Source: Ascidiella aspersa
Taxonomy: Eukaryota
Assembly: GCA_963924565.1 (NCBI GenBank)
Contig: OZ004607.1
Span: 29,140,001-29,204,000, forward strand
DNA length: 64,000 bases
Reading direction: 5' to 3'
This document shows, piece by piece, positions 10,799 through 56,288 of the stretch. Every line of letters starts with the position of its first letter. The first letter of the stretch is position 1. The position numbers and the translations under genes are program-made. The notes beneath the pieces are model-generated. The model worked only from the letters and a program-made list of their open reading frames with translations. It had not been told where the DNA came from and did not search any database.

Positions 10799-10904
10799 AT
10801 GGCTTCGACCAATCGCGATCTGTTTCTGCTAGCTGTTGCTTCACTTTGTATATTCTCTGCTGTCGCGCAGGATGCTGCAAGCAGTGCGAGCGCCACAGAA
10901 AAAC
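10799..10904 (+). CDS. Exon 1 of the mosaic mucin gene: signal peptide
   Basis: [23 protein letters not shown]|QD has a hydrophobic core and an A-x-A cleavage motif. Acceptor TTTTTAG ends at 10787; donor GTAAGT at 10905. Confidence 0.85.
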
Positions 10905-13900
10905 GTAAGTTGTGACTGTTCTTGCCTTTTATCATGCTTTACACGCGTCGTTAGTGTAGTGTTCCGGCTTCCAAACAGTCCACGTTCACATTATTTTGGT
11001 AAAAATGCACTCGACAACCGCATACTGATATATTAGTCTTTGGCCCAGACTTTTTTTAGGCAGATTTTTCCTGTCTATCTTGATTGTTTGACCATTGTTA
11101 TTTTTGGCAAGGTTACCCTACTACCGGCTAACATTTATTCTGAATCCATATTGTTTGAGCATGAGAACAGCTCTATAAGAGCCTTCAGGATTGTTTCCTG
11201 GTTGTTCAATTGCACCTAAATTTTTTACTGGCCATATAAACACGACTTATTTACTTATATTTACACGTGCTTACACGTTCGTGCGTGGCTTTATGCCATC
11301 GTTTTATCCCGAAGGCGTTTTGCCCAAGTACGCCTGAATGACGCTATACATGACTATTTGTCCACCAAATATAAACATCTACGATAAGTCATGGGAACAT
11401 TACGCGGCATATAGGATACAGCTTTGTCAATCTGATATTTAGCAAAATCTCGCTACGTAACATAATAATTTAAAAGGCTTTTGCATTACTGCACTTGTGT
11501 CACAGAAAAAACTATAAAAATATTTAGTTGCTCCATTGGGCACAGACAAATACCACTTCTATTGTACAGTAGGGTTAGTTATATGTGGATGAAAAAGTTG
11601 GAAGCGTATCCAATTTTTTACACAAAATACACCAAATTATTTGTCCAAACACTTCACAACATTTTTTTAATTTTTTTTTGTTAAATTATTAGGACTGTTG
11701 ATGTTAATACACTCTAACGTCTTATGTTAACTAAAGTTGGAAATAAATTCTAGTATTGTAAACAAATCGTTTTGAAATGACGTAACTCCACGTCAAGTCG
11801 TTTTCAAAAAATAGCAAGCCAGTCAAAATCCAAATCAACAATCCCAGTCCATCAACACATTGTAATAAGTAAAATTCAAGTCACATCATTTACATAAAAC
11901 AATGTTAAACTTAGAAAAATTAAAAAGCCCATCAAATAGCAAGTTTATAATAGTGTACAAATTAAAGAGATTTGTATTTCTATTTTTTGTTCCTGATCGT
12001 ACAACGAAATCTGTGGCCCTTTAATAAATTAGTGCAAAACGTTTCTCCTCTATCTCGAAAACTTGCTCTTTAAGTAAATTGAATAGTTTTTTTGACACAA
12101 CGTAATAACAATGAAACCCTTATATAATGTGGCGCAAAAAAGCTTTGTGTTTGAATTAAATACAGAAATAGTTGTTAACCTTGGCGGCCAGACTCAAACC
12201 TGCTATAGTCACACATACAATGTTTTTTTAAGGTGTTTTTTTTTTATTTCTCCAGCGGTTTCCCAAATTTTGGACTTGCAACTTTTTGGTATTTAAATGA
12301 AACACTTGCGGTCTCTTAAAACTACTTAGCGGTCACCCAAACCAAACCTTAAAAAAGCCCTGCACACATATATGAACCGCCCCCATTGTGATCTTCATAC
12401 TTTACTAAACCCAACAAACTTTGAAGCGCAGATATCCCGTTATAATTGTTTTTGCGTCAGTAACACGCGTCTTGGCGAACATGTGCCTGTGGATATGTTA
12501 GACCTCATCATACCTATCGTCTTTCACTAGCACTTTTTCTTCTTATTCGTTCATATTATTTATTTTCATTTCTGCTTTGACCTGATGAAACACGGTTGTG
12601 CAAAAGCTTGTCGAGAATTGAATACAGTTTGTCGTCAAATAGTACCAACTTATTGCCCTATTTATACTTTACAGCCAACGTCGCTGGAACCTGTGGAGGG
12701 GTCATAAGCGGCAAAGCCGGCGGCAGAATAGCCAGCCCCAACTTTCCGAACTCCAATTACCCACCCGAGATTAAGTGCGAATGGGAAATTATTGCTCCGA
12801 GCGATTCAGTTGTTGTGGTGAGTATACGTCGGTTCCTAACCCTTTTTAACCGTCCTTTTTTACAATCGTCCTAGCTTTGCCTTGCATCCTCCTCCTCAGA
12901 CTTAATAATACCAAAAGCAATTCGGTAGTTGTTGATCACACAACAACCAGAATAACATGTAAATACTAAAGTTGATCGTTTGCGTAAAAATGCGCGTAGT
13001 TGGTGGAGATCGGCTAAACTTTAATTTAAGAAACGGACAAATCGGTCACACAAATGTGTGAATTGCTCGTGTTGTAATCAATCTGATATTGACAAACATG
13101 TTGTGAGGCTAAGCTAAATAGAAACCACGTGAAAAGTGGCCAAAACTGTGTAAAAAGGTATACATTGCGTAATCTTGTCTTAAAAGGTGTAATGCACAAG
13201 GCAATGACCATATTGCAAGAACATCATAGATTTACACAAACTGGGTAGCCTGGGTAACCCGTGTATACTTTAGGCTAAAACACATGTCATACAATGTTAT
13301 GCGCAGATATAGTTTGAACTAAAAATGTCTATGAAAGACAATAAAATAAAAGCGTTTTTTTATTTTTGCAGTTTTTTAGTGTACTTTGTGGTCGGGATGT
13401 CGTGGTACCGAACCCGTGACAAACAAATCACAAATCGATCGTTAAAAGTATAGCAAATTGAGAAAAAGGGGACCAAACTCCGGGAAACTACTTATAATTA
13501 CCTCATATGCAGTTTAATGGCTTGTATTCCTACAGTGAAAAATACAGCTATTAAACTTACAAAAAGGTTTATTAAATGTACATGTGTAATTTTGGAACGC
13601 ATAAAAGAAGAATTAACACAATACACCAATCGCAGCATGAAATCAATACAAAAGGTAGATATCAGAGAACATCACGCTGGGTTGGCGCCATCTCCCCATT
13701 TTAGGGGTATCGTAAAGTACTAAACTCAGGTTTAAATTAGGTACTTTTCACTTCTTGATTAAAGTGATTACTATTCGTTTATTTAAATGCAATTTTTTGT
13801 CAATTTTAGTACTCAACACTTTCATTCTGTCAATTTAAAGAATAATACTAATACTTTATTGTGTGTGTCTTATTGTCACATTTCTTAATCTTTTAATTAG

Positions 13901-16900
13901 TTTTCATCGTCGTATATGCATCTTGAGCCGTGGGACAATGATCGGTGCTACGACGAGCTCCTGATTTATAAAACGGCCAACCTGTCAGACAAACCTGACT
14001 TATATTGCGGAAACGACACGATCTATACTCAGACCTCTGTTGGACCAAAGTTAATGTAAGTTGTAAAGTAAATGCATGAGAGCTGCACAATCTTTGGGCA
14101 TGTTTTGCGGACACCGATATTTGCATTCTGCATGTTTACCTGACTCTAATAGTTAATATAATACATTCAATGAAAATTACAATTTAATGTTTACAAATAT
14201 ATTGCAGTTATGTTAAGCTTCACCAAACACTTTTAATTTATAACATATGTTTACAAAAAATTGACTAAAATAGGACCGAACAGCGTGTTGTTTTAAATAT
14301 AAAAATAAGGGTATGCTTTGTTTTCCTTGATTTAGCGACCATCCAATGATCGTCTTGTGACTTGACAACGCCTTTTGCTGTGTCACATTTTTCAGCGAGA
14401 AAAAGTGTAAAAAAAAAAAGATATCAGCAATATAAAAAAGTCTGACGGCAATCTACAGGTTAAAGTGTATAAACTTTATTTTTATCTTCAGTGTGAGATT
14501 CACAAGCGACTACTCCAACCAGACGTCAGGCTTTGTGTTGAACTGGTACGTGTTGGACCCCAGTCGAATGGCACCTGTGATCAACTGCGACTTTGAAGGC
14601 CCCCTCGGATTATGTCCTGGTGAGTTGAACAACTGTCAAATTGTTATTGTTCGTTAGTTAAAAGAATTAAAACGTAGAGATTCCTGCATATTTAGTTTGT
14701 TTGTTTCGGATATTGTGTCCTGGTGAATTGAACAATTCTCAACTGTTATTAGTCGTTAGTTAAAAGAATTTTAAAATCGTCATTTTTGGCGATTAGATGC
14801 GTCCGATATCTGATGTTTTAAAGACAACGCGATCCAAAACGATCCGACGCTAAATGACGTCATCACTATGTAAAACAAGCGAAATCGGCCAAATTGAAGT
14901 GCAATGGTAATGTTTTTAGGGCATTGCGACGATATATAGGTTTGATTTACGAACCCGATTTATTTTAGGTTTTATTGTAATAGTTTCTAAGAAATTTAGT
15001 AAAACTACAGCATGGCTTTAGTACACAAATAAAATTGATGGAAGGATTATAAAGCCAAATCTTAAAGATTTCTGGTTGAGAACCATTTTCATTACCTTAA
15101 CGTAATACTTACACTTCCTGTATAATTGGAATTCTTGTTTTTATCGCGAATGATCATATTAAACAAAATTGCGTAATTCGATTTACAAATTACAAAGGAC
15201 ACATCGCTTGTTACGTACAGGGCAACTTTTAAATCGAATAGTTGGAAACACGACACTGCCTAATTTTTCCATGTATATATAGTTGGATCACCTGATCATT
15301 TGTTCTCCTCGTGAGTCACTATTGAAATTAAATCTCGTTTTTGACGATATATATGAACTTTTGGTGATATCACATAAATCAAACGTATACCTGACAGATC
15401 ATCAGTCTTCGAATAGCGGCTTACTTTCGGTATTACTATATAATCGACTTTGGCACCTTAAAAAAGTACATCTTTTTTTTGCAAAGCAACTCAAGTGTAT
15501 ATGCCAGTGTTGTACGGAATCACGTTAATAACTTGACGTAATTCGTTTGGGTAAAATTACTTGACTCGACTTAATTCTTGTGCACAAAGACTTTTCTTGG
15601 ACTTAAGGCATTGATTTAAGTGACCTGGGTCGATATTAAGTTTTTCATTTAATATTTTGATATAAAATTGATACATTTAGCTCAAGGTTTCCGCGTAAAA
15701 CGATCAGATCTACATGATTTATTTGTTACTTTTAGTTGATGTAGTGCTCATAATTGGTTGAGTTCACCAATTTTGATAGTTTATCATTTTACTCGCGTAT
15801 TATAGTTATTACGTTTGACTTTGAGATGCCTTGCTTTAATAATGATTTGACTTAGACTTGACGTGGGCAACTGTTGACTTGGAATTAGACAAATACTTAT
15901 TATTTTTTAAAAGGCTTGACTTGGACTATAGTCATTTAACAACTTTGGGGATTTAAGCCATTTCAAGATAACTTGTTTCCAACACTAATACATGTTAAGC
16001 AAAATTGGGCGCCTATACTGAGCTCGAACCGCCTATCGCTGATAAAGTTGCGCCCGTGGTTGTAAACCTACTTTTATTCGCAGGTTGGACACAGAGCGCC
16101 GACGACCAGTTTGATTGGACGATCACCCGAGGACCCACGCCGTCAAAAAACACGGGACCTTCAGCGGATCACACAACTGGCACGCAAGGTTGGCACCGGC
16201 CGATATTTAAATTTATCGGTTACACGCGTGTTTTATAGTATGTTTGCCTGCTAGGTTTCTCATTTTGCCTTTTCAATCAACCACTAACTTTTACGTCGGT
16301 CGGATATAGGCATTTGTTTAAAATATGCGATTTGGAAAGACTAAATGAAAACCAGAGGCGGATCCAACGTGCCAATGACCAATTTTTTTGTCTATTTCAA
16401 CTACTTAAAGGCTTTTTTTCTCGCTCTGCGTGAATATAAATTATGTTTTATTTGATAAAATCGCTCATTTTGACGAAATCGTTTTAGCCCAAGGCGTCCT
16501 GCGTCCCAAGGCACCCACATAAATAAACGTTTGGGCAACTTGAACAAAATTAAAGCGTTTTTGTGCTTTGCGTAAACTAATAACATCTTTGTTATGTAGC
16601 TTTTGTGTTGAAAATAACACCCCCAACCAAATATTTCGACATAATAAATAAACTGTGTGGTGTTGAGGTTACTTTTTATGACGTCTTTTGACGTAGCTTT
16701 GTGACGTCACGTTATAACGTTGCATAGTTACGTCATCTTTTAAAAAAGTTTCATGCCCTCCAAAAAAATCAAAACCTTTTTATAGGATTCGATATACTTG
16801 TTCACCGCTATCCTATATTTGTACAAACGCACATTTGTCCAAAATTATTTCTTTTGCCCTCAAGCTAATTATCTAAAACGCAACAGGATTTTTCTGTATT

Positions 16901-19900
16901 TCGATTTGCAAGCAATTTTTACCGTTCGTTGTTTACAGCGGGAAGGTATGCTTTCATTGAAGCATCGTCAAAGAACGCCGGAGTGACTGCTGTACTACAG
17001 ACACCGCAGGTTACGCTCAACGGTATGCACAACTTTAACGAATGTTTAAACTATTTCTCTCTGCCTTGTTTAAACAAACTAGCAATTAATGACAAAAAAG
17101 TAATACGGTAACCTTTTATGCTTCTGAAATATTTTTCACGCTTTTGTTGTGACAAGTGCTCTAAAAAAAAGTTAACTTCTAAAATTAATTGGATAAGAAT
17201 TTTTCAGATCCATGTTTAGAATGACACGTTTACGTGAATAACACATTAGCATACAATAAAAATGTAAACAATTGCAAGTTGGGATAATAATTTTTTGTTA
17301 TGATTGGTGAAATATACTTTGTCATTCAGGGTTACAAATACCACCGTAATGTTGTCAAATTTATTCTTTTTGGCAATTAATCACAGACTATAAGAGCCAC
17401 AGCTATAGAGAAAACCGGGAGACTCACTAAATATAGAAGGCCTGAAAAAGTTAACGAAATCTTTTGCCAATCTAGAAAAACTTTTTTCTCAGCCGGAACC
17501 GATTACTGCCTCGACATGTGGTACCACAAGTATGGCACAGGGAACGGAAACATAAGCGTGGTGCTCCTATTTCCCGCCGGCAACGGTAGGACACTGCAGT
17601 CACTGACCAAAGAAACGGACAACAAATGGGAGAACGTCTTCGTGCCTCTCCCGCCAAGCGACGTACCCGTTCGCGTAAGTGCGACATGTTTGGGAAGTAC
17701 TTGCCTCGGCTCAACATGTTTTGGCTGGATAATTGTCGGGTGACTTGGTTTGATTCACTGCATACCTGTACTTAGGGCAGCGTTGCTTGGTCAATTAAAC
17801 TGCAACGTGGATTCGTCTTATAATGGACCTACAATTTGTTATCAATAAAAATATGGAAATTTCGCCAGAAAAATAAGTTTTTTACGTTTTGTAAATTGAT
17901 TACCTCTTTGTTATTGTTATACGCGTATTCCACTATAGTAACAACGAAAAAGACACACAATAAAGGAAAATGTAGTTGGAAAATTCACACTATTTCTATT
18001 TAATGTATCCCTTAGCTTAAAGGCTTAAACGTTACAATAAAAAACATAGATAAGTAAAAAGCTTCGACGTGGTGCAGTCGCGGAAAAAACATTTGAATTA
18101 AATCAGACAGTATCCTGGAAAGAAAAAAACAAATATAATTCTGCTACAAATATAAGCAACAATAAACACCAAACACAAAATATTGAGGACATTTGAGCAT
18201 TTTGCAGTATCCTATAAGGTGACCATTTAATTTTGGAGAAATACGACAAATTCTCCTAAAAGGGGATTTAATGCAATCCTATATGCTATATAGCTTACAG
18301 AAATTCGAAATATTGCCAAGTGTTATGCAAAACAACGGCAAAATTTAATGTTCCAATATTATTCACGACAATACATTTTGGTTAATCCTATTCAGGAACG
18401 ACCTATTCCCAACGAATGTATTTTAGTTATCTATGTTGTTATTTTAAATGGATTAGATTGGATTCGAGGGCATTGTGGGAAGGAACTACAGATCGGACGT
18501 CGCCATCGATGATATTAAGCTGATACCCGAAGCGTGTAAAAAGGAAGAAGGTAAGTTGAACTAAACTTTTAACTTCTTAGTAGATTTAAAGAAGAAATAG
18601 TCTCCCTTTAGATTACAACACACTAAAATACAACCTTGTCACTTATAGATGTTGATAAACTTTGTTTATCAACAACCGAAAATACATTTCATTAAGGGCG
18701 AATATTCATTAAGGAACTTGGATGCATTTCTAATATTTATCAATGCGATTAATCAATGAAAGTCAAAACTGTAGAAAACTTTTGCATAAATCGAACAGCA
18801 GTTCACCTTTTGTAAGTTCAAGTCAAAGTGTGAAATTGGTAGTTGATAAACAATGTTCTAAAAGTCTAAATTACTTAAACATACCTGAACGAAATTTTAC
18901 ACCAACGCCGTGTGTGTAAACCACAGGTTTCGATTTACATTTGTTTACATTTGCCTGTCGTTAGAGAATTTCTAGTTAACCTGGACAATAGAACACCTCT
19001 GCAAACAAGGTTTAGCAGAGGGGTTCTTAAACTTTTTTTACCACGGACCTCTAAATTTTTGGGGGGCTTTGGGTGGACCATGGTTGGCAAATTTTTTCAA
19101 AAATTGACGTCATAAATTTTCACCACAATACGAATAGACTTTCAGAAATATGCTGATAATTTAGCTAAAAGTCTAAATACATTGAGTGCTAAAACGTTTT
19201 ATTTTTAATTAAACTCTTTCCTTAAGTACTTTCTTAAAAATACACTAATATTTTAATTTGGCCTTCATGAACCTCCTAAAATTAGTTCACGGACCCCAAT
19301 GTGTCTATGGACCCCAGTTTAAGAACCCCTGGTTCAGCAGAATGGTTTGGGTGTGTACCACTAATTACAAGGTGTATAGAGGGCAGAGGCGTAGGCTACT
19401 TGTATTTTGGTAGAAACTTATATTTGTTTAAGCTGTGGAATAAACTACTGCAAGACGATGCTTACAGATATAATATAATAGTATTTTTTGTTAGTAGAAA
19501 TCAGGGGTCAAAGTAAAAACGTTTTATGACCAGATAGATAAACATTTTTTTATCAAAACGCATAGAAGCTTCACAAAGTTACGTCATAATAGAATGTCTA
19601 AAGCAACCTTGGCAAACCTAAACGGTTTGTCCAAGGTCGATCACAAATTTGCAACTGAAATTGTAGTTCAAACAACATGTTTAAGAAGTTGGTGGAATTA
19701 GCCTAGTCCAAAAGATGGATAACGTTAAAAAAAACTTTTTTATCGGTAAGGCCGACCTGCAATTTATTTGCCGGAAAGCCTACTTTTATACTTGTGGTTA
19801 AAATGATTTCAACTTAGGTCTTATGTTGTCCGTTTATTTTCATTGTTTAACAAAGGAACTTATCGAATTTACTTTTGCAACAGTTATCAACTGCACCAAT

Positions 19901-22900
19901 GAAGAATTTAAATGCGCGACGGGCGATACGTGCGTACTTGAAATCTATAGATGTGACTCCACTCCTGACTGCCCCGACAATTCGGACGAAGAAAACTGCG
20001 ACGAGTTTGTTTTCGAAAGTAGGTTTTTGCCGTTCTTTTACTAATTTGTTCTTCCAGGAGCAGTAACGTTCACTAAACCATAATGGATAAGGCTTGCTAC
20101 TAAGGCGTTAATACAGTGTTGTAAACAAGTCATTTTAAAATGAAGTCCCAGTCCAAGTCATCTGTTGCGCAAGTCAAGTCACAATTAATTCGTACTTAGA
20201 GCATGTCAACGTTAAGTTAAGTCCCTGTCACAAAAATAAAACGTTAAACTGGAAAAACTGGTAGACGCGTCCGTATATATATATAAATATAAAATATATA
20301 TAAAATATAAAATATATATATATATATATACCAATCATTTTACTAGGCCCGCGGATCAATTGGTATTTAAACTTTTATAGGGAAAAAAAGCTTTGACATT
20401 TTTTTCTTATAATTTCCTAATTTTTTTAACTAATTTCACTTGTAAGGCGTTCTTGCCGATTAATAGTACCAGCTTTGCCAAAAAACCTCTTTTTTCGTTA
20501 TATATGTAGGCTATTTCAGATGCCCTTTTTGACTCGGCCCTCCATATAAATTTTGTTTCTTATGTGACCACCTGTCTTAAATAATTACCCATCCCTGAGA
20601 TAACCTTACGCCAACACTAATAATCCCATACATATTTTAACGCAACAATTTTTTTGAATGCCTCGCAACCTTTAATTTTACAAAAATTTTACGCACACAT
20701 ATAGGTAAACATCACTGGGTTTCGTGTCTAACAAAACATAATTTAAAAAGCTAAAGGTTATAACATAAGGATACACATAGAGCTTCAGGTTAACAGGGTA
20801 GGTTGCCGTTGTTCGAGGGCCGAACTGAAGCGTAGAAATTCCGAAGACAAGATTGTTAATATGCCCTATTGTTGATGAACAGACGAAACGACAACAGCGG
20901 CCAACCTCGCTGAGCCTGTCACTACGCCGCAAACCGATGCCACCGGCGCCTCAGATCCGAAGGTCTGCGGTTCGAACCAGGTGTACGTCGTATGTGCCAA
21001 GTCGTGCGTCCATACCTGCTACGATGGGGAAATCGCACCCCCTTGCCCGGCCCTGCAATGCGTTGCCAGATGTGCCTGTCCTCCGGAACTACCAATACTT
21101 TACCAGGGAAAGTAAGTGTTTATATTTTCCTGACAATAATTGTTAATCATAAACTTAATATAGAGTTGACATATGTTCAAAATTTTCCATTAAAAAAATA
21201 TTTTTTTGTGTCTTAGTTAAATGAGAATAATTCTACAGACAAAGTATGCGTAATGGGCGCTCCAGGAAACGTTTATTGTGATTGTGGGTATATAATGCCA
21301 TAGTTTTGCTTGTTTAGATAGTCAACGCCTAAATTTTCGGTAGAATGTAAAATCCTATGCGTTACGTTGCAAACATTTTTACGTATACCATTGCGTTGTT
21401 GGTAGCAGTACCAATCTGAATTCTAGATCACCTAAAACAGCGGCAAAGTTAAGTATTGCAACAAAGCTGTTAATAGAGCTGTACCGGTCATAATTCCAGC
21501 ACTTCGAAATAGGATAATAAAAGCACAATTTTCTAACAGCAATAAAAAAACAACTTATAACGGAATGTCGAATGTCAACCACGATTTAGGTTCAGCGATT
21601 TTTTCAAGAATCATTTGCCCGCACCGCGCTTCCACGCTCAAGCTTGCTCGGTTTTCAACTAAAACATCAAATGTTTAAAAAAAACATTACAGCTCTTTGT
21701 GAAAGAGTTATCACGCTTAACCAAACAACGTTTGTCAGGTGTATCGAGTTCAAAGATTGCCCCGCGAAGCCTGAAGAGGTTCAACTGACGCTAAAGAGGA
21801 CCGGACCCTCAAAAGTGCAGGTCACATTCAAAGAGGTGCCCAACGCGGCATCATACAGGGCCATGATTTACGAGACCGCAAACCCGAGCAGATCTGGTCT
21901 TTCCAACGTCAACGCCTCGTCAAACCGCAACGCGATTGTTACAGTGTCGTTTGCCGAGCTTTTTTCAGGTGAGCTATTCCTCCTAAAAGAAAAAAAGCTT
22001 AAGTTAGGCCTACTAGAAGAAACAGTGGTAGAACACAGTGTTTTATTTAAATACGACGACAAACAAAAATCAAATAAATACTACTCTTCTGCTTTGTGTT
22101 TAACGTCTCATATTTAAAAAGTCGATCGGCGGAGAGATAAGTAATTTGTTTATTTCGGTCCCATTTCCAAAGCCTAAACATGAGTCGCGATATCCCACTT
22201 TCAATCTACGGAATAAATCATCGCGAAACCAGGAAGCAAAATACTTACATGTATTATGGTGGCTGATCCGTTGTATGTTCAGGAATAGATGAAACCTGCT
22301 GTTTGACTAATTTTATTAACTTGGTGGTAACTCGAAGTTTAAAGTTGTTTACAACGTTTTCTAAAACTCCGATGGTGATTTTACTTTTCCTGTTTCACAG
22401 AGACTGAGTACTCGGCTCAGGTGTTCAGCATAAACGAAGGTTGGGAAGTTGCTTCCAAGATCATCTCACTCAAAACAAACGCCACCACTACGGCGATGCC
22501 CAGCACCACAACCCAAAGCGGAACTGGTTAGATGGTTTATAATGTTAAAGCGTAAGGGCGAATCTTAGGATAGGCACCAGGCCCTGTTGCCATACTATTT
22601 TTTTACTTAACAGTGCTCATTTGCAAATTATTCTACCTGTGTGGTTTTCTAGTATGTTTTCAGTATTATGCTAACCCTACTATATTCGAAAGTAATCTTT
22701 TGACATTTTAAACTTAATTAACGGATATTTTCTCACTTTAAGCGATACGACGTAACTTCAATCACAGAGTTACACACTATTTCGATATTCTGAAACAACA
22801 GTTTTGCTAAGGTTGTTGGTTTAATAGATAACTTTTCAGCTACAAGCAAAATTAGTTAAAATTCCAATAAAATTGAGATTAAACACACAAATACAGCATT

Positions 22901-46900: not shown

Positions 46901-49900
46901 CGAAACGACGTCACAATATATATTATCACAGAACATCTAAAAAATGTAACCTAGGAAACATTCAGTTATCGTTTTAGGAAACATTAGGTTGTCGATTTAG
47001 TGCACAAATATACTCAACTCAAATCTTGGTTTAATTACATTTAAGAAGATAGCGGGCGGGCCCAGTTGTGAAAAAGGAACCTAGACTGACACAAAAGGCA
47101 TTGCTTTACCGGAACGGCGCACCCGGTGCAAAACTTATTTTGACCGAAACGCCGCTCCGGGCAGTTCCGGGTAACTTTTATGACTTTTTTAGTGTAACGC
47201 TTTATATACAACGTTCAAACAATAACATAATGTGCTATTCGCGGGTTCACTCATGCTCTTTAATGTCCGAATTCAATCGCTTACGCGCAAATAAGGGCGT
47301 TGTTCATTTTTTACATAACAGGATGCCGCCGCCCATCACCAATGGCGTTTGTAGCGACGCCAAGCTGGACTTCAGTTGGTCGAATTCGCGTGGCTTCAGC
47401 TCCTGCGATCCGTCCACCATTCCTCCCGCGCCCAAATTCGGCTCGGACCTTACCATTCGTTTGGTGCCAGGCACACAAGCTGTCAAATACTCGATAAACT
47501 ACGAACTCAAATGTAAGCGAACTCTTGCTTGATGAACTGAACCGCATTACTTTTTTCATTTATTTCGTGTACATTTAGATTACCCAAGATTGGGCTAGCG
47601 GTTAAATTAGAAAAGCGTATACCTTGCAATACCATGTCTCCAACTATAAAACAGTATTTTATTTAAAATTTTATTTATAATTTTTATGCATATTGCCTGA
47701 GTTTCCACAGCTATCCTGAGTTTCCATAGCTATACAGTAATTGTAATTCGGTCGAATGTCTATAGTCCCTGTTTGGAACAATTGTGCGAAACTAATTGTA
47801 GTACATTTTCCTATTGAATATTGCAACTGTCACGTATAGTGTTTCGAGTTTATTAAAATAGTGCTGTGTATGACATGTTATCATAACAATATATTCGATA
47901 TAGCAAAAAGGTTAAAAATTTCACTGCTTTAACATCTACACTAAATTATCCATCTTCAAACTTTGAACGTAACAAATCAAACTCTGGTGGCCAAGCGTTT
48001 AAAACAAATTACTCCCTTTTAGATTGTGATGTAGCCGACCAGCGATACAGGCCTGGTTCGGCTTGTGACATCACGTGCGAGAATCCGAGCCCAAGATGTA
48101 CATTTAACGTGGTAGAGCGATGTATGTGCCCGCCTGACCTACCGGTTCTCCACAACGGAAGGTATGCAGCGGGGACAAATAGTGCATTTTAAACTTTAAG
48201 TATTAAAATAGCACAGACCACGATTTAATGAACGCTGATAAACGGACTCCGTATAAAGTCTAAGTCATCAGTTTTCCAAGTCCAGTCCCAGTCAAGTCAT
48301 TGTGGAGCAAGTCAACTCCAAGTGAAATCCTTAAAACTAGTAACATTGATAAACTTATTATAAGTATAACGCAACTAAAAAATTAGCAAAACATAACATT
48401 TAGCAAGTAAATTGTTTTATATGAATAAATTCGGATAAATAACCCAATTTTATAAAAATAAACGAAAACACGTTATTTTAACGTTGTGTCGTAATCCGTT
48501 TTGAACTTATGTTTTGTACGTAAAGGTGTATCAAATCATCAGAATGTCCAGCGGCGCTGCAGAGCTCTGAAGGATCAGGCGTGACTGATGCTGCTGCCTT
48601 TGCTAGCGCAGAGGTTTGTGATTTCCATACAAATATTGTAAAATGCGAGTCAACTGTTACGTAAAAGTGTAGGCCTAGATATAATGTGTCAGCATATCGA
48701 TGCCATTGGGGTATTTACTATGACAACATATAGCTTGTTCTATTAACTGGTCCGCCGCAATGTTTAGCCTTCGACATCTACATCGCAATACTCTTCAACG
48801 CAACGCACCACCGAGCCATCCTTGGATTCCAGTATGAGCCCCTCCTCAGATTCCTCTTCCAGAGCACCCACGGGGTCCCCCACTAACCCGAGTCCATCCC
48901 ACCGAGCATCTGGGTCGACTTCATCCCAACCCACAGGCACTACCCACATGCCGACCCCTGACGACGCAACCTTTGGGTCCCCCGACCTGCTTCTGCAATC
49001 CTTGTCGGTCGAAAACGTCACAGCGACCAACGTTTGCCTTAATCTTCGCGGAAACAAAAACGCCGAGATGTATGTGATCGAATTGTACCGCAGCGACAAG
49101 CTCGATTCGCCGCTTGGTTCATTCAACGTCAGTCAAAACAAAAATAAGGGCATTCTATACGTGACGTGCATCAACAAGCTACCGAAAGGTGCGTTAAGTT
49201 ATACTTTGTGATTAAGATGATTTTTCAAAGAGTTATCATATTTGTAGGGTGATTTAGACGACAGTATAAGACCAATTGGCGTAAATTTCTAGTATTATTG
49301 TATACGAAAAAATTATTATGTTTTGGTTTAGATACGGATTACACAGTCGTAGCTTGGGCAAGAAAAGGGTTCGACACTGGAATGTCAAGAATGCTTCATT
49401 TCACAACCAAAATGAACCAAGGTAACATTTTGCTCATTCATAAACCTAAGTGCATAAATTTTGTGTTTACTCCACTATTTGTGAAAAATATTTTTTATAG
49501 GTAATATATTTTCCGATTTACTTGCAGCATCAAACATCAGTAGTACGGAATCAACTGGGACTTTAATGTCATCATCGTCAACTAAGGCAACCGGGGTTAA
49601 AACGACAGCTGCTTCAAATCTGGACACAGAATCGAAATCAACCAACATACCAGCTTCATTGACAGATGTACCATCTTCACCAACCAATACACCTGTCAAA
49701 ACAACCGGTGCAACGGTATCATCAACCAACGTTCAACCATCTACAACTGATGGTTCCATTGCATCAACAGATGCATCGGCATCTCCAACTAATGTACCTG
49801 TTACATTAACTAGGAAACAAGCTGCGTCAACAGCTCTGCCAACCCAAACAACCGATCAAGCAAAGGCCACCTCCGGCACACAAATGCCAACAACCGATGG

Positions 49901-52900
49901 ACAAGTGCCTTCAAATCGGCCACTTGTGTCATCAACCAGCAGCACACCATCCTCACAAAACACAAGTCCAACAGAAAGTTCTGCCCAACTTCGGGAAACA
50001 ACCGTGGTTTCAAGTTTCGAGCAACCAAGTTCCATGTCAACTGATCCAACCATGGATGGTTCCGGGTTTAGTGTTGATGGGTCATCAACTGACGCACCAG
50101 TGTCAATGCCAGATGCATCAGTGTCATCAACAGATGCACCTATGTCATCAACCGATGCACCAGTGTCATCAACAGATACACCTATGCCATCATCAGATGC
50201 ACCTATGTCATCAACAGATGCAACTATGTCGTCAAGCGGTGCACCAGTATCATCAACCGATGTACCAGTATCATCAACCGACGCACCAGTGTCATTAACT
50301 GACGCACCAGTGTCATTAACCGATGCACCTATGTCATCAACAGATGCACTAGTATCATCAACTGACGCGCCAGTGTCATCATCTGGTGTACCAGTGTCAT
50401 CAAGCGTGCCACTATCAACACAAAAAGTCGATCCAACAAAAAGCTCTGCCCAAGACCATACAACAAGCGTGGTCGTAAGTTCTGAGCAGCCAAGTTCACT
50501 ATCAACTGATCCAGTGACCGATGGTTCTGGCTTTAAAGCTGACGGACCATCAACCAGTGCAAAAATGTCATCAGCCAGTACTCAAGCGTCATCAACAGTT
50601 GCACCAGTGTCATCAACCGGCGCACCTATGTCATCAAGCGGTGCACCAGTATCATCAACTGACGCACCAGTGTCATCAACTGACGCACCAGTGTCATCAA
50701 CTGACGCACCAGTTTCATCAACTGACGCACCAGTGTCAATGCCAGATGCACCAGTGTCATCAACTGACGCACCAGTGTCATCAACTGACGCACCAGTGTC
50801 AATGCCAGATGCACCAGTGTCGTCAACAGATGCACCAGTATCATCAACCGATGCACCAATATCATCAACCGATGCGCCAGTGTCATCAACTTACGCACCA
50901 GTGTCATCAACTGACGCACCAGTGTCATCAACTGACGCACCAATGTCAATGCCAGATGCACCAGTGTCGTCAACAGATGCACCTATGTCATCAACCGATG
51001 CACTAATATCATCAACTGACGCGCCAGTGTCATCATCTGGTGTACCAGTGTCTTTAACCGTGCCACTATCAACACAAAAAGTCGATCCAACAAAAAGCTC
51101 TGCCCAAGACCATACAACAAGCGTGGTCGTAAGTTCTGAGCAGCCAAGTTCACTATCAACTGATCCAGTAACCGATGGTTCTGGCTTTGAAGCTGACGGA
51201 CCATCAACCAGTGCAAAAATGTCATCAGCCAGTACTCACGCGTCATCAACAGTTGCACCAGTGTCATCAGGCAGTACTCAAGCGTCATCAACAGATGCAC
51301 CAGTGTTATTAACCGACGCACCAGCGGCCGCAACAAATGCAACATCTTTATTAATCGACACACCAGTCTCATCAACCAATGCACCAGTGGTATCATCTAC
51401 TGGTACACCATCATCACAAACAATTAATTCGACAAAAAGTTCTGCCTCACTTCAGGAAACCACAGTAGTCGTAAGTTCCACGGAGACGAGTTCATTGTCA
51501 ACTGCAGCGCTCACGGATGGTTCCGGTTTTAATGTTGATGGATCAAACAATACACCAATGTCATCAACTAGTGATCCAGTGTCTTTAACCGATGCACCAA
51601 CACCAACAACTGGCGTACCAGCTGCCACAACCGACGCATCACTGTCATCAACTGGTAGTCCAATGTCATCAACCAGTGAACCAGTGTCTTCAACCTATGC
51701 ATCAACGCCATCAACTGATGTACCAGCTGCATTAACTGAAGCATCATCAACAGATGCATCCGTGTCATCTACTAGTAACCCAAATTCAGCAGCTACCGAA
51801 GCATCAGTTTTATCCACAGCTGTACGAGTATCATCAACGCCAGCGTCACCAACCAGTGTAACAGTTTCATCTCCCAGTTCACAAGTTCCTTCAACCAGTT
51901 CACCAGTGTCATCAATTAGTACATCAGTATCACCAACCAGTGCATCACTGTCATCCACAGACGCATCACTGTCATCAACCAGCACACCAATGCCATCAAC
52001 AGTTGTGCCAGAATTATCAACTGATGCACAGGGTTTATCAACTGATGCAGAAATGTCGTCAACCGGTACAACAGTTTCATTAACCGGTGCACCAGTGTTA
52101 TCAACACATGCATCAATGTCATTAACCAGTACACCAGTGTCATCAGCCAGTGAAACAGTGTCATCAACCAGTACAACACTATCATCAACCGATGCACCAG
52201 GATCTTCAACAAATACAGTATTGTCATCCACCAATGCACCAGTGTCATCAACAGATGCAGGATTGTCATCAACCAGTACATCGATACCATCAACCAGTGT
52301 ACCAGAAGCATCAACCGAAGGGTCGTCAAGCGATGCACCAGAATCATCAACTGATGCAGAAATGTCATCAATCGGCACACCATTGCCATCCAGCGGTACA
52401 CCAGTACCATCCAGCGGCACACCAGTTGCATCCAGTGGCACAGCAGTATCATCCGGCGGCACACCAGTTGCATCCAGCGGCACACCAGTGCCATCCAGCG
52501 GCACACCAGTACCATCCAGCGGAACACCAGTTGCGTCCAGCGGCACATCAGTACCATCCAGCGGCACACCAGTACCATCCAGCGGAACACCAGTTGCATC
52601 CAGCGGCACACCAGTTGCATCCAGCGGCACACCAGTTGTATCAAGCGGCACACCAGTACCATCCAGCGGAACACCAGTACCACCCAGCGGCACACCAGTA
52701 CCACCCAGCGGCACACCAGTACCATCCAGCGGCACACCAGTTGCATCCAGGGGCACACCAGTTGCATCCAGCGGCACATCAGTACCATCCAGCGTAACAC
52801 CAGTTGCATCCAACGGCACACCAGTACCATCCAGCGGCACACCAGTTGCATCCAGCGACACATCAGTACCATCCAGTGGCACACCAATGCCGTCCACCGG

Positions 52901-55900
52901 CACACCAGTACCATCCAGTGGAACACCAGTTGCATCCAGCGGCACACCAGTGCCATCCAGCGGCACACCAGTTGCATCCAGCGGCACATCAGTACCATCC
53001 AGTGGCACACCAGTGACGTCCACCGGCACACCAGTACCATCCAGCGGAACACCAGTTACACCCAGTGGCACACCAGGACCATCCAGCGGCACAGCAGTTG
53101 CATCTAGCGGCACACCAGTACCATCCAGCGGAACACCAGTTGCATCCACCAGCACATCAGTACCATCCACCGGCACATCAGTACCATCCAGCGGCACACC
53201 AGTTGCATCCAGCGGCACATCAGTACCATCCAGCGGAACACCAGTTGCATCCACCAGCACATCAGTACAATCAACCGGCACATCAGTACCATCCAGCGGC
53301 ACACCAGTTGCATCCAGCGGCACATCAGTACCATCCAGTGGCGCACCAGTGCCGTCAACCGGCACGCCAGTACCGTCCAGCGGAACACCAGTTGCATCCA
53401 GCGGCACACCAGTTGCATCCAGCGGCACACCAATACCATTCAGCAGCACACCAGTTGCATCCAGCGGTCCATCAGTACCATCCAGTGACACACCAGTGCC
53501 GTCCACCGGAACACCAGTACCATCCACCGGCACACCAGTTGCATCCAGCGGCACACCAGTGCCGTCCACCGGCACATCAGTACCATCCAGCGGAACACCA
53601 GTTGCATCCAGTGGCACACCAGTACCATCCAGCGGAACACCAGTTGCATCCAGTGGCAAACCAGTACCATCCAGCGGAACACCAGTTGCATCAAGTGGCA
53701 CACCAGTACCATCCAGCGGAACACCAGTTACATCCAGTGGCACACCAGTTGCATCCAGCGGAACACCAGTTGCATCCAGTGGCACACCAGTACAATCCAG
53801 CGGAACACCAGTGCCATCCAGCGGAACACCTGTTGCATCCAGCGGCACACCAGTACCATCCAGTGGCACACCAGTGCCGTCCACCGGCACACCAGTACGA
53901 TCCAGCGGCTCACCAGTTGACTCCACAGCGTCGTCAATTCCCTTGTCCTCAACCACAGTTGCAGTTAATCCCACGTCGGTTAGCGAACAAACAGAAACGA
54001 CAACGGTTACAACGCCAATATCAGTGACAACTTACATGGTAGACAGCACGCCAGAAACACTTGCTACAACTCAAGTAACCTCACCTAGCATAGACGCAAG
54101 CGTTGCAACGCATGTTTCCACAACAATGCAGGCTACACAAGCCGAAACAACTCCTGATGCTAATGCCGCAACACACACCCGTTCTTCGACGACTGCAACC
54201 CAAGTAGTCACAGTTACGACAGTGGCAGCCGGGACCACCCCCGAGACCCAGCCACCTACCACTGCTCCCCCCAAACCGTTGCAAACGGAAGTGATGAACA
54301 TAGCTCCTGACACTGTTTGCGTAAAAGTTAAGCACGAGTCGGTAAGTTGCTGTGTTTATAAAAATATATGAGAAATTATAACTGGCAACAGCATTACAGC
54401 CACATATATATAAAATTGCGATTTTGCCGGATAAAACACCTAGTAAAAACTATGTTCGCTTATTTCAAGAATGTGGATGCTTACCTTATCTCAATTGACC
54501 AATCGTCACAACCTTCGGATCAAGGATTTTCAGAGAACTTTGCAGAAGTCAAGGCCATGTATCCCAATACATATAAGTGTTTCTTTGACACTATACCGGG
54601 TAAGTCGTGCTAACATTTTAGGGTATGGGGTAAAGTAATTGTGCGCCATGAATTTTATCAAAACATCAACAAATTAGATTTAATAAAGCAAACTGTATTA
54701 AAATATCTATTTTTCCTAATTTATCCATGTTTTGACATTTTTCTCCGAACAATCTCCAGTTTTTATATTCTTTAGATCAAAAGTACGTTGCCACAGTGAT
54801 TCCTAAAGAGAAGGGTACGACGGCCGGAAAGCCCAAAGATATCAACTTCACCACTGAGAGTACGAACAAAACTTGCTATACTGCTACTGTTTTATATTTG
54901 ACATAATGCTATTCAATCGTTAACTCGAGGTTTAAGTGACTAAGGTGCAATTTGTATTAGTTATGAATTATTACACCAATATTCATATGCGTTTCTAAAT
55001 TGATGGAATACCTAATATGCATTTAGGTAATCCGCCACCAACTGCAACACCTTCCAGCTACAAACAAACCAACGAAACGAAAAAGTGGCAAAAGGATTAT
55101 AACCAGTGGAAGTAAGAAATCTAAACATTATAAATTCAGTATAACAACACAAAAGCCTATATAAGTTAAAGCGAGCAATTACCTTAGTACTATAGTTTTA
55201 TATGGCGTCAAAAATAACCCATATATAGTCCTCTAGTTTAATCCCCATTTGCCTGTTACTTCCGCGGTTCATCATACTTATATCAAATATTCCCGTTTAT
55301 AAGTCAGCGAAAATCCAACGAAAATTATTTGGCGATATTATGTAAACTGCTCTTGAGAAAAATTTAAATGAATCGATTTTAAATATTAGGAAATCGAATG
55401 TGTTTTTGGCGTAGCTATATTCTCCGGCTGTCCCTATGTTTTTCGGATCTGAATTTATAGCTGTTATTTTTTGCGCAGAAACGACACAGTCAACAAATGG
55501 TTCAAGATGGCGTCGGACTACATGAACGCATTTGGATCCAAACTGCCCGGAATCACGCCGGATCCTGAGCAATGCCCGCAACCTTATAAGCCAACGTGCA
55601 GTGTTACGCCGAGGCCGTTCGTCGACTACAACGGTTGCCTGTTTTTGATTTGCGACTCGCCTAAGCAAGGTAAGGATGTTTTGCGTTGGATTTTCAAAGC
55701 TAACGTGTGCAACGTTAAAAGCAAAGCTAGAAGGAGTTAGAATATTTTTTGATTTTTTTGAGAAAAAATGAGTGAAACTGTACTTAAAGCGCCATCGAGA
55801 AAAAAATAGACATGTTACAAATGTAAGTTGTAGAATGTTTTAGCATAACGGAGCACAGTATGAAACATGTATTTTTTCTCTCGATAATTATTCATTTTTT

Positions 55901-56288
55901 GTTTGAATTTTACTAGAGTGGCACATTTCAATTAAACTCGTCTTTGTAAAAATTAAACTTTGTAAAATAAAAGAGGCGCGTCGGCAGACATTTTCGCGTA
56001 ACAGGATTTATGCGTCACTGACGTACAGTCTTGCTTTGGTAACACATATAACCGAAACCTAACAAGACTTTATTTTACCTATACAAATGTTATAACTTGC
56101 TTGTCAACTGATTAGGCAAAGTGTTTGAAAATCCACATACCGGTGTTTTTTTACCTATAGGAGATTTCACGCCGAGCGACGTGGCTAACTGGGAAAAGGA
56201 GTACGCCACCTACACGGAATACCTGCTGCCGCAATGGCAGAAGCTACTCGCTTCATATTCGGAAGCCTACAGCAACAATAACCCGTAA
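10799..56288 (+). CDS. Giant secreted mosaic mucin/proteoglycan (~4,986 aa, 54 coding exons): SP-CUB-MAM-LDLa-TIL-FN3-FN3-TIL-FN3-LDLa2-TIL-FN3-[LDLa2-Thr]x3-TY4-PT mucin-TY6-CUB-TIL-FN3-S/T mucin-FN3-novel C-terminal domain
   Basis: Manually spliced exons, all GT-AG with compatible phases, total 14,961 nt ending in TAA: 10799-10904, 12675-12817, 13901-14055, 14492-14619, 16084-16188, 16939-17022, 17493-17674, 18457-18550, 19884-20018, 20883-21111, 21739-21968, 22401-22526, 22929-23162, 23543-23647, 24316-24565, 25681-25916, 26574-26696, 27181-27303, 27438-27545, 28068-28362, 28850-29073, 29715-29894, 30226-30333, 30617-30727, 31070-31177, 31541-31693, 31997-32107, 32445-32552, 33344-33496, 33799-33909, 34247-34354, 35148-35285, 36401-36619, 37315-37533, 38173-38385, 38583-38789, 39159-40793, 41739-41963, 42562-42783, 43299-43535, 44587-44817, 45831-46049, 46507-46675, 47322-47512, 48023-48161, 48526-48613, 48768-49188, 49332-49421, 49528-54341, 54470-54599, 54776-54859, 55027-55111, 55479-55669, 56161-56288. 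Confidence 0.85.
12576..12615 (+). ncRNA. Degenerate minimal type I hammerhead ribozyme (Penelope-like element remnant), copy 1
   Basis: TTTGAC-CTGATGA-A-ACACggttGTGC-AAAA-GCTT-GTCGAG. Stem I pairs, but the core GAAA is mutated to AAAA. Part of a ~95-bp repeat also found at 27585-27685. Confidence 0.6.
12675..14619 (+). CDS. Exons 2-4: CUB domain 1
   Basis: [33 protein letters not shown]...[16 protein letters not shown]...YCGN...[19 protein letters not shown], followed by the start of MAM (INCDFE). Confidence 0.9.
15506..15987. mobile_element. Degenerate MITE with GACTT/AAGTC subterminal repeats (related fragments at ~11750-11890, ~20113-20230, ~48255-48330)
   Basis: CAGTGTTG...CAACACTA ends with repeated GACTTGAC motifs. 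The same AAGTCAAGTC motif recurs in the other fragments. Confidence 0.5.
16084..18550 (+). CDS. Exons 5-8: MAM domain
   Basis: [34 protein letters not shown]...[10 protein letters not shown]...[11 protein letters not shown]...[20 protein letters not shown] are the canonical MAM motifs. Confidence 0.95.
19018..19331. mobile_element. hAT-type MITE (same family as 24700-25035)
   Basis: TIR AGGGGTTCTTAAAC / GTTTAAGAACCCCTG; 8-bp TSD GTTTAGCA/GTTCAGCA. The interior aligns with 24700-25035. Confidence 0.8.
19884..30333 (+). CDS. Exons 9-23: LDLa x3, TIL x3 and FN3 x4 with Thr-rich linkers
   Basis: LDLa: [36 protein letters not shown]. 10-Cys TIL: [58 protein letters not shown]3: VSF..V..A.SY.I....V.FSGL.PE..YSVQIF. 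Confidence 0.88.
24700..25035. mobile_element. hAT-type MITE
   Basis: TIR CAGCGGTTCTTCAAC / GTTAAGGAACCCCTG; perfect 8-bp TSD CTTTAAAC. Confidence 0.85.
27585..27685 (+). mobile_element. Short retroposed insertion carrying a minimal type I hammerhead ribozyme (27601-27640), copy 2
   Basis: TTTGAC-CTGATGA-A-GCACgtttGTCC-GAAA-GCTT-GTGAAG, flanked by the 14-bp direct repeat TTTACAATAAATGA (27571-27584, 27686-27699). Confidence 0.75.
30617..35285 (+). CDS. Exons 24-32: three copies of LDLa-LDLa-Thr-rich linker
   Basis: C..(D/N)[29 protein letters not shown] / [34 protein letters not shown] / [17 protein letters not shown]..., each present three times. Confidence 0.9.
32880..33220. mobile_element. 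MITE with AGAGATGTCCGA/TCGGACATCTCT ends, duplicated with the segment (also ~34682-35023; only the right half at ~31260-31416)
   Basis: Inverted ends flanked by TA, with internal ATCGG/CCGAT repeats. Confidence 0.65.
35973..36073 (+). pseudogene. Truncated pseudo-exon copy of the first thyroglobulin-1 exon
   Basis: Aligns with 36332-36435 including the acceptor TGTGCAG|CCACAC. Cys TGC has become TGA, and similarity stops after ~11 codons. Confidence 0.8.
36401..46049 (+). CDS. Exons 33-42: ten thyroglobulin type-1 repeats interrupted by a ~470-aa Pro/Thr/Glu mucin stretch
   Basis: Each phase-1 exon reads LT.CQ.....P.C...G.(Y/F)...QC......C(W/R/A/N)CV...G..IPG.......(D/N)C. The mucin stretch lies in exon 39159-40793. 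Confidence 0.93.
37838..38094. mobile_element. hAT-type MITE
   Basis: TIR CAGGGCCGGATT / AATCCGGCACTG; 8-bp TSD CACAGGAC/CATAGGAC. Confidence 0.8.
41236..41541 (-). repeat. Cluster of tRNA-like (SINE-type) units: two tandem on the minus strand, one partial on the plus strand
   Basis: Minus strand GTAGCTCAGTT(G/A)GCAGAGCGA.GGTCCCGGTA.G.CC.GAGGT..G.GTTC(G/C)AACC carries A- and B-boxes, at ~41261-41331 and ~41397-41471. The partial plus-strand copy is at ~41496-41541. Confidence 0.7.
43611..44076. mobile_element. hAT (Charlie-like) MITE
   Basis: TIR CAGTGGTTCTCAACC / GGTTGAGAACCACTG; 8-bp TSD CTTTAAAG/CTTTAGAG. Confidence 0.88.
46507..49421 (+). CDS. Exons 43-48: divergent CUB domain 2, 8-Cys TIL, EGSG/Ser-rich linker, FN3
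   Basis: [31 protein letters not shown]...; [53 protein letters not shown]; [15 protein letters not shown]...[13 protein letters not shown]. Confidence 0.82.
49528..54341 (+). CDS. Exon 49: 4.8-kb Ser/Thr/Pro mucin exon
   Basis: Matches the 1601-aa ORF in the track. Acceptor CTTGCAG ends at 49527; donor GTAAGT at 54342. The exon ends with the start of the last FN3. Confidence 0.92.
50080..53920 (+). repeat. Coding 21-bp minisatellite: heptads SSTDAPV, then SSGTPV(P/A)
   Basis: TCATCAACTGACGCACCAGTG units at ~50080-51050, degenerate heptads up to ~52370, then homogeneous TCCAGCGGCACACCAGT(ACCA/TGCA) units at ~52370-53920. Confidence 0.95.
54470..56288 (+). CDS. Exons 50-54: last FN3 and an unrecognised Trp/Tyr-rich C-terminal domain
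   Basis: NVDAYLISI...[20 protein letters not shown]...INFTT, then [27 protein letters not shown] - 4-Cys loop - [32 protein letters not shown]. Confidence 0.8.

Follow-up and report, generated by a model that had tools for sequence, protein, structure and literature searches.

A predicted giant secreted mosaic of CUB, MAM, LDLa, TIL and Tg1 modules with mucin-like domains in the ascidian Ascidiella aspersa

Do the many small cysteine-rich exons and long Ser/Thr/Pro-rich reading frames between positions 10799 and 56288 of a 64,000-nucleotide stretch of the Ascidiella aspersa genome belong to one gene, and if so, what kind of protein would that gene make? The stretch, referred to here as the window (C1:29140001-29204000 of a 308.6-Mb assembly with 75 contigs, from which all genome-wide matches below are drawn), contains no N, and our analysis suggests an answer in graded steps. 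A real secreted mosaic gene carrying CUB, MAM, LDLa, TIL and Tg1 modules together with mucin-like segments is very probably present at this locus. That all of these parts belong to a single gene of 54 exons is a reading we favor with moderate confidence, and the main threat to it lies at the 3' end.

The gene model was obtained with a purpose-written, splice-aware gene finder that combines codon log-odds with generic donor and acceptor matrices, and its output was then curated, guided by internal repeats. The curated model comprises 54 exons on the + strand (10799-56288), all joined by GT-AG introns of 106-1770 bp (median 487) that are mostly in phase 1. The joined frame runs for 4,982 codons with 0 internal stops, and frame, composition and hydrophobicity were checked by scripts on the joined 4,982-residue protein. 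Codon scores reach at least the 94th percentile in all 54 exons, non-training exons included, relative to 812 background open reading frames (ORFs) of the window. The product is rich in Thr (16.3%), Ser (14.7%) and Pro (10.4%) and contains 172 Cys and 69 Tyr (1.4%); Ser/Thr/Pro-rich sequence accounts for roughly half of the chain, and some 32 small disulfide-knotted modules, strung together, for the rest. These run from CUB-MAM-LDLa through TIL/FN3-like units and LDLa pairs to ten Tg1 repeats, a second CUB, a fourth TIL and a fifth FN3-like domain. Because the CUB, MAM, TIL and FN3-like modules each span exon junctions, they are intact only with the predicted splices. Tiny exons of 7-30 nt and two in-frame ‘introns’ that the gene finder proposed within the big mucin exons were discarded as artefacts, and a candidate exon at 41275-41385 was discarded for its weak splice sites.

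Entry into the secretory route is predicted from exon 1 (10799..10904), where the ATG at 10799 is followed by a hydrophobic 19-mer scoring 1.93, the sole 19-mer above 1.6, and the exon ends in a phase-1 GTAAGT donor. No 19-mer in any other exon exceeds 1.13, and the C-terminus is hydrophilic. With no hydrophobic segment beyond the signal peptide, the protein therefore has neither a transmembrane segment nor a hydrophobic tail of the glycosylphosphatidylinositol (GPI) type.

The folded modules were identified with Pfam run exon by exon on stop-free + strand pieces, and all other searches were likewise made exon by exon. CUB-1 is spread over exon 2 (12675..12817; Pfam CUB E 8e-7 on the piece 12581-12871) and, by the model, exons 3 (13901..14055; codon score in the 97th percentile) and 4 (14492..14619; 100th percentile), the latter also opening the MAM domain. 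This one MAM is matched by Pfam in three of its exons, namely 5 (16084..16188; E 1.6e-4, profile positions 9-44), 7 (17493..17674; E 2.3e-7, positions 66-132) and 8 (18457..18550; E 5.8e-4, positions 132-158, the end of the domain), and exon 6 (16939..17022), placed by the model, fills the profile gap at 44-66. The first of nine LDLa modules follows in exon 9 (19884..20018; Pfam Ldl_recept_a E 1.4e-10). Across the protein, LDLa matches range from E 1e-6 to 2e-13, and six Cys are present in 9 of 9 LDLa exons.

Downstream of LDLa-1 come TIL/FN3-like units, in which introns interrupt both kinds of domain. Each TIL exon holds eight Cys, and the remaining two come from a C-x5-CP motif that opens the next exon, so that a phase-2 junction completes a ten-Cys TIL. 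TIL-1 lies behind a Thr-rich linker in exon 10 (20883..21111; Pfam TIL E 7.7e-7) and ends in exon 11 (21739..21968); TIL-2 and TIL-3 each follow a Ser/Thr/Pro-rich linker, in exons 15 (24316..24565; E 5e-8) and 20 (28068..28362; E 4.1e-6), and end in exons 16 (25681..25916) and 21 (28850..29073). These three matches are clear. The fourth, in exon 45 (48035..48161; E 5.4e-3), is weak, and its last two Cys stand, before a linker, in exon 46 (48526..48613), within the same C-x5-CP motif as in exons 11, 16 and 21. The exons that finish TIL-1, TIL-2 and TIL-3 also carry the first parts of FN3-like domains 1, 3 and 4, whose second parts are exons 12 (22401..22526), 17 (26574..26696; codon score in the 96th percentile) and 22 (29715..29894, which continues into Ser/Thr/Pro-rich sequence and is 53% Ser/Thr/Pro). 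FN3-like 2 occupies exons 13 (22929..23162) and 14 (23543..23647; 98th percentile). Exons 12, 14, 17 and 22 share the motif (S/Y)SVQ(I/V)FS, and the first parts of domains 1, 2 and 4 were recognized in the FN3-like alignment. FN3-like 5, further downstream, is the weakest member: its first part, behind a Ser/Thr/Pro-rich stretch in exon 47 (48768..49188), aligns with the others at 15% identity, and its second part is exon 48 of the curated model (49332..49421; 94th percentile). Support for the fold comes from sub-threshold Pfam fn3 matches in exons 16 (E 1.2e-3) and 21 (E 8.2e-3), from PDB profile matches to FN3con/Fibcon at E 0.002-0.06 and from Atlas fn3 clusters at 0.82-0.85 for exon 16.

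A second group of LDLa modules suggests how this gene has grown. After LDLa-2 (exon 18, 27181..27303; E 1.5e-6), LDLa-3 (exon 19, 27438..27545; E 3.1e-8) and a Ser/Thr-rich linker known from the model only (exon 23, 30226..30333; phase 1-1), the region 30520-35430 consists of three tandem units of about 1.8 kb, each encoding two LDLa modules and a Ser/Thr/Pro-rich stretch, whose DNA is 95-97% identical, introns included. Unit 1 comprises LDLa-4 (exon 24, 30617..30727; E 3.2e-13), LDLa-5 (exon 25, 31070..31177; E 1.8e-7) and a Thr-rich exon of 71% Ser/Thr/Pro with weak splice scores (exon 26, 31541..31693); unit 2, LDLa-6 (exon 27, 31997..32107; E 1.9e-13), LDLa-7 (exon 28, 32445..32552; E 2.4e-7) and exon 29 (33344..33496), placed by repeat comparison and the model; and unit 3, LDLa-8 (exon 30, 33799..33909; E 2.1e-13), LDLa-9 (exon 31, 34247..34354; E 2.4e-7) and exon 32 (35148..35285), placed by repeat comparison and 15 nt shorter than its counterparts. 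Exons differ by 3.2% where introns differ by 6.9%, and by 2.8% where introns differ by 4.0%. The three units seem to have arisen by recent duplication within the gene and to be diverging still.

The ten Tg1 repeats form the most uniform part of the protein. They are encoded by exons 33 (36401..36619; Pfam Thyroglobulin_1 E 4.7e-11), 34 (37315..37533; E 2.1e-12), 35 (38173..38385; E 5.8e-13), 36 (38583..38789; E 4.2e-11), 37 (39159..40793; E 4.6e-12), 38 (41739..41963; E 2e-10), 39 (42562..42783; E 4.9e-14), 40 (43299..43535; E 1e-8), 41 (44587..44817; E 1.8e-11) and 42 (45831..46049; E 1.6e-10), an overall range of 1e-8 to 5e-14. In alignment, the six invariant Cys are kept in 10 of 10 repeats, which show the type-1A fold pattern with its CWCV core. 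A profile built from them matches thyroglobulin best among PDB structures (E 1e-55), and saxiphilin (E 2e-15), the p41 fragment, a cathepsin-L inhibitor (E 8e-11), and IGFBPs are also among the matches. Tg1-5 differs in its setting, lying at residues 481-541 of a 582-codon ORF (39143-40888) behind a long mucin segment. In the intron upstream of the array, positions 35972-36072 hold a 104-bp, 82%-identical copy of the Tg1-1 acceptor region and first exon bases (36330-36433); it carries stop codons and is a dead partial duplicate. The array is followed by CUB-2, in exons 43 (46507..46675; Pfam CUB E 3e-8 on the piece 46461-46676) and 44 (47322..47512; placed by the model, no Pfam match alone, codon score in the 100th percentile).

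Apart from many short linkers, the Ser/Thr/Pro-rich sequence is concentrated in two blocks. The first, of about 470 residues in exon 37, is Thr-rich (36% Thr) and built from tandem units of 78 and 105 nt detected with Tandem Repeats Finder (TRF). The second is exon 49 (49528..54341, within the ORF 49485-54368), a domain of 1,605 residues that is 56% Ser/Thr/Pro, contains one Cys and holds two TRF arrays: the 7-residue unit SSTDAPV (21 nt, 46 copies, 50081-51052) and 14-mers of the form SSGTPVP/A (42 nt, 37 copies, 52366-53917). With this long Ser/Thr/Pro tandem-repeat domain, the protein is mucin-like in the broad sense of a secreted tandem-repeat glycoprotein.

Several domains are absent. The genome contains 107 exon matches to VWD (PF00094), 0 of which fall within the window, and Pfam finds TIL but no VWD-C8-TIL assembly across all Cys-rich exons. 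With 5 Cys in 206 residues and no Pfam match at E up to 0.1, the C-terminal exons show no C-terminal cystine knot (CTCK), and no exon has the Cys content for a CTCK or an EGF domain. Tg2, Tg3 and the cholinesterase-like domain gave no Pfam match in any scanned piece, and Rfam and tRNA scans of the window gave no matches. The initial annotation of this locus, made from the sequence letters and a list of ORFs, had proposed 54 exons joined in a stop-free frame of about 5,000 residues, with a signal peptide, no transmembrane or GPI-like tail, and no VWD, CTCK or EGF domain. All of this was reproduced independently here, as was the overall picture of an intact, signal-peptide-bearing mosaic gene whose product is about half mucin-like. 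Its list of modules also stands for CUB, MAM, nine LDLa, four TIL and ten Tg1; the six FN3 domains that it listed become five, weakly supported.

What would such a protein be? We think that one ascidian gene probably encodes a glycoprotein of some 5,000 residues that is secreted and not anchored in the membrane. The signal peptide would direct the chain into the endoplasmic reticulum (ER), and dense O-glycosylation of the Ser/Thr/Pro stretches would turn them into stiff, hydrated bottle-brush spacers between folded modules that act as binding or protective sites. By analogy with their families, the LDLa and CUB modules may bind ligands in a Ca2+-dependent manner and the MAM may mediate self-association, while TIL and Tg1, both protease-inhibitor folds, could protect the coat or its environment against serine and cysteine proteases. 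Since VWD/C8 and a cystine knot are lacking, polymerization by the route of gel-forming mucins should be impossible, and the protein would more plausibly act as a monomer or MAM-linked oligomer decorating a mucus layer, lumen or matrix than as a gel-former. The roles suggested in the initial annotation, in which it forms mucus, a feeding net or tunic and assembles without VWD domains, are hypothetical. Its origin would lie in phase-1 exon shuffling, with growth by tandem duplication continuing, as in the three 1.8-kb units that are 95-97% identical.

Indirect evidence bears on whether the locus is one gene or several. A scan of 9-56.3 kb for possible first exons, with an ATG, a hydrophobic stretch and a usable donor, returned three candidates: the start at 10799, one inside a MAM exon, and one that is intronic and in the wrong phase. 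Exon 1 is thus the single plausible signal-peptide exon, and as all downstream modules are of extracellular, disulfide-rich kinds that need ER entry, one gene is favored. Inter-exon gaps are at most 1.8 kb, and CUB-2 starts 457 bp past Tg1-10 with no signal peptide before it. Several observations weigh against this picture. An open frame alone cannot exclude two co-oriented genes, because phase 1-1 exons will always fit together in frame when spliced. The RNA data, from one run of this species with no tissue given, about 6% of it read and mapped to 53950-59900, have zero depth over 53950-56138 and so give no transcript support there. If the donor at 54342 goes unused, a stop at 54369-54371 ends the mucin exon. 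Exons 50 (54470..54599; strong donor of 4.8, weak acceptor of 0.3, no Pfam match), 51 (54776..54859; weak donor) and 52 (55027..55111; weak acceptor, required to reach phase 2) are uncertain link exons with poor splice sites, needed only to keep the frame, the latter two placed by the model only. The C-terminal exons as a group have no Pfam match, no paralogue in their own genome and no word-sharing homologue in a set of 5.8 billion proteins, and comparison with the Atlas returned noise only. The FN3 assignment is weak, and the glycosylation, binding and inhibitor roles proposed above are drawn from knowledge of the domain families.

The strongest competitor follows directly from these points. 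The real product may differ from the full 54-exon protein, either ending at 54369-54371 without exons 50-54 or being divided into two or more co-oriented units or isoforms, for example one product with the CUB-MAM-LDLa-TIL-FN3 part and another with the Tg1-mucin part. No splice junction is backed by RNA, the link exons have low splice scores and serve to fix the frame, and the symmetrical phase-1 exons would permit skipping and alternative ends; AATAAA motifs also lie about 310-330 bp past the stop at 54369. However, AATAAA/ATTAAA motifs occur near chance in this AT-rich DNA (10 observed versus an estimated 6.6 or so expected), a downstream secreted product would find no second signal-peptide exon, and the gaps remain intron-sized. 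Exons 53 (55479..55669; an orphan module with 4 Cys, acceptor 2.5, donor 5.0, ORF at about the 98th percentile, no homologue found) and 54 (56161..56288; hydrophilic, ending in the stop codon, acceptor 3.4, ORF at about the 99th percentile, no Pfam match and no paralogue) combine strong splice sites with high codon scores, in tension with a shorter product. A few RNA reads sit around and just past the predicted stop at 56288 (56139-56735; depth at most about 2, 95-99% alike, first mate on the minus strand); they may be a trace of a 3' untranslated region (UTR), too thin to use. We therefore regard a shorter or divided product as unlikely, though still a serious contender to the one-gene model.

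The one-gene protein can next be placed among its relatives. A search of 1.84 billion representative sequences with its Tg1 profile, built on all ten Tg1 exons, gave 2,681 proteins, of which the best 150 were rescanned with hidden Markov models (HMMs) of the protein's own LDLa, TIL, FN3-like, CUB, MAM and C-terminal exons. None of these 150 multi-Tg1 proteins has the same architecture. The own-module HMMs matched 2 of the 150, an amphioxus LDLa-Tg1 mosaic and one TIL fragment, neither an orthologue. Names were obtained for 28 matches of the profile, and the top named ones include vertebrate thyroglobulin-like proteins, nidogen-2, saxiphilin-like proteins, a 5,095-residue crinoid protein and hemichordate ‘mucin-2-like’ proteins, with a small Clavelina ‘equistatin-like’ protein as a further match. 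The nearest sequences, at 50-57% identity, are Tg1-only exons on environmental contigs of 1.6-4 kb. A literature search found no paper that combines these domains, and the Styela endostyle atlas makes no mention of mucins or thyroglobulin.

Comparison with individual families shows which parts are familiar. The hemichordate ‘mucin-2-like’ proteins (Ptychodera XP_070580638, Saccoglossus XP_002733296) are likewise secreted and pair 11-13 Tg1 with Ser/Thr/Pro-rich stretches, but they carry Mucin2_WxxW, VWC and pacifastin domains, lack CUB, MAM, LDLa, TIL and FN3-like domains, and are about half the size. Amphioxus ‘OLFM3’ (CAH1274403, 2,094 amino acids) is secreted and joins six LDLa and six Tg1 with several protease-inhibitor folds, yet these come with WAP, four Kunitz, olfactomedin and NTR domains, and without MAM, CUB, TIL, FN3-like domains or a long tandem-repeat mucin domain. 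The gel-forming mucins and VWF-like proteins (MUC2, MUC5AC and ascidian VWF-like genes) share large central Ser/Thr/Pro tandem-repeat domains, TIL and secretion, whereas the window protein has no VWD, C8 or C-terminal cystine knot and so lacks their known polymerization route. Zonadhesin combines MAM, a mucin stretch and TIL, its TILs sitting within VWD assemblies, and MALRD1 and MAMDC4 combine MAM with LDLa; all three are membrane-anchored and repeat the MAM several times, while the window protein has a single MAM, no transmembrane segment and no VWD. Vertebrate thyroglobulin is secreted, has a similar number of Tg1 repeats (11 versus 10 here) of the six-Cys type-1A kind and is the best solved-structure match, but it adds Tg2, Tg3 and a cholinesterase-like domain and has no mucin domain, CUB, MAM, LDLa or TIL. 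Thyropin-type inhibitors (the p41 fragment, equistatin and saxiphilin) share the type-1A Tg1 fold with its six Cys and CWCV core, which makes protease inhibition a putative function here.

The domain combination, judged from the proteins and literature searched, thus appears undescribed, in line with the initial annotation. Its distance from known proteins had nonetheless been overstated by that annotation, which was made without knowledge that the host is an ascidian: giant secreted Tg1-array proteins with long, repetitive, Cys-free regions are known in ascidians (PMC12992692), Tg1-plus-mucin and LDLa-plus-Tg1 mosaics are annotated in hemichordates and amphioxus, and very large secreted proteins assembled by exon shuffling, with Tg1 arrays and mucin stretches, are accordingly part of the known deuterostome repertoire. 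Zonadhesin had been left out of the original comparison altogether.

The ascidian precedent raises a second competing explanation. In Styela clava, ScTG-like (Sc.CG.S284.31) is a secreted 630-kDa protein made of Tg1 domains only, with many repeats and a Cys-free C-terminal region (PMC12992692, Nat Commun 2026). Thyroid hormone is formed from it by iodination, metamorphosis depends on it, and 10 of 12 S. clava Tg1 proteins were recovered from the endostyle with an anti-thyroglobulin antibody (PMC12992692). The same work defines a TG-like signature of more than 2,000 amino acids, at least five Tg1, many disulfides and a Cys-free C-terminal region, and reports no clear ScTG-like orthologue in other tunicates, even Styela plicata (PMC12992692). 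The window protein could then be a functional counterpart, a giant secreted Tg1-array protein of the endostyle or larval trunk that becomes a source of thyroid hormone once thyroid peroxidase has iodinated its tyrosines. With 4,982 residues, ten Tg1, 172 Cys and a 1,605-residue exon containing one Cys, it fits this loose signature, and it resembles ScTG-like further in being ascidian, in its size (about 500 kDa of peptide here), signal peptide, at least nine Tg1, large repetitive content and disulfide-free C-terminal region; its Tg1 profile also scores best against solved thyroglobulins. That score, however, mostly reflects repeat number, and Tyr is scarce (69 of 4,982). Compared by published description only, ScTG-like is Tg1-only, whereas the window protein adds two CUB, a MAM, nine LDLa, four TIL and five FN3-like domains, and the function of ScTG-like is demonstrated in Styela, whereas that of the window protein is putative. 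The lack of a clear orthologue even in S. plicata adds to the doubt, as does a separate Tg1-only exon cluster in the same genome, which fits ScTG-like better.

This second Tg1-rich locus, on contig 6 (C6:11681420-11724013), spans 43 kb and has at least 17 matches to Tg1 exons, distributed over both strands, and LDLa, TIL and FN3-like exons were absent from the 30 kb sampled. We consider it a better candidate for the ScTG-like counterpart than the window gene. We accordingly find it improbable that the window protein is the counterpart of ScTG-like, and would give an equally small chance to its being iodinated in the endostyle or larval trunk, whether instead of or besides the Tg1-only genes of contig 6. 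Were it so, thyroid-hormone precursors of invertebrate chordates could be mucins that are released into the feeding stream and carry their Tg1 array within a CUB/MAM/LDLa/TIL scaffold. Elsewhere on the same contig, a single Tg1 exon at C6:28073032-28073253 scores 85 bits against the window's Tg1 profile, far closer than any other locus, with a second, weak Tg1 1 kb downstream; it may be a small paralogue.

Least probable of all, and to our minds very unlikely, is that the locus is a silent or decaying gene whose recently expanded exon array has lost expression: zero RNA depth over 53950-56138 in the sole run, the broken partial copy of Tg1-1 and the fact that low-complexity exons stay open by composition alone could be read this way, but 54 of 54 exons are open, all Cys are intact in the ten Tg1, nine LDLa and four TIL, exons diverge less than introns among the duplicated units, and a single, partly read RNA sample cannot show silence.

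If the one-gene model is right, its product is among the largest secreted ascidian proteins and cleanly illustrates phase-1 exon shuffling together with tandem duplication that is still under way inside the gene. Two protease-inhibitor folds, TIL and Tg1, then share one chain with binding modules and mucin domains, while the VWD/cystine-knot machinery of classical mucins is missing; the sister group of vertebrates would have another way of making a component of mucus or matrix. The Tg1 array also makes the protein one of few candidates for the newly raised question of which ascidian proteins carry iodine. The curated model should be useful because automated annotation likely fragments the gene. 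On the other hand, invertebrate genomes often encode giant mosaic proteins restricted to one lineage, and so far we see no sign of an unusual mechanism in this one.

A few observations lie outside the gene. The sole well-covered stretch in the RNA run is 58900-59900, where depth reaches 13 with reads in both orientations, many mismatches and loose ends; this is probably an expressed repeat or a neighboring transcript rather than a piece of the mucin gene. Beyond it lies a Lys/Ser-rich ORF of 223 codons (60866-61537). The ascidian identity of the host is borne out by an intronless HSP70 gene of this genome, which is 84% identical to its counterpart in Phallusia mammillata, 79-81% to those of Ciona and 70-75% to those of molluscs, arthropods and amphioxus. 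Elsewhere in the genome we noted four intronless HSP70 genes, at C6:9581908-9583716 (- strand), C6:9595664-9597469 (+ strand), C3:26098434 and C1:12661714, the two on contig 6 being divergently oriented and 12 kb apart.

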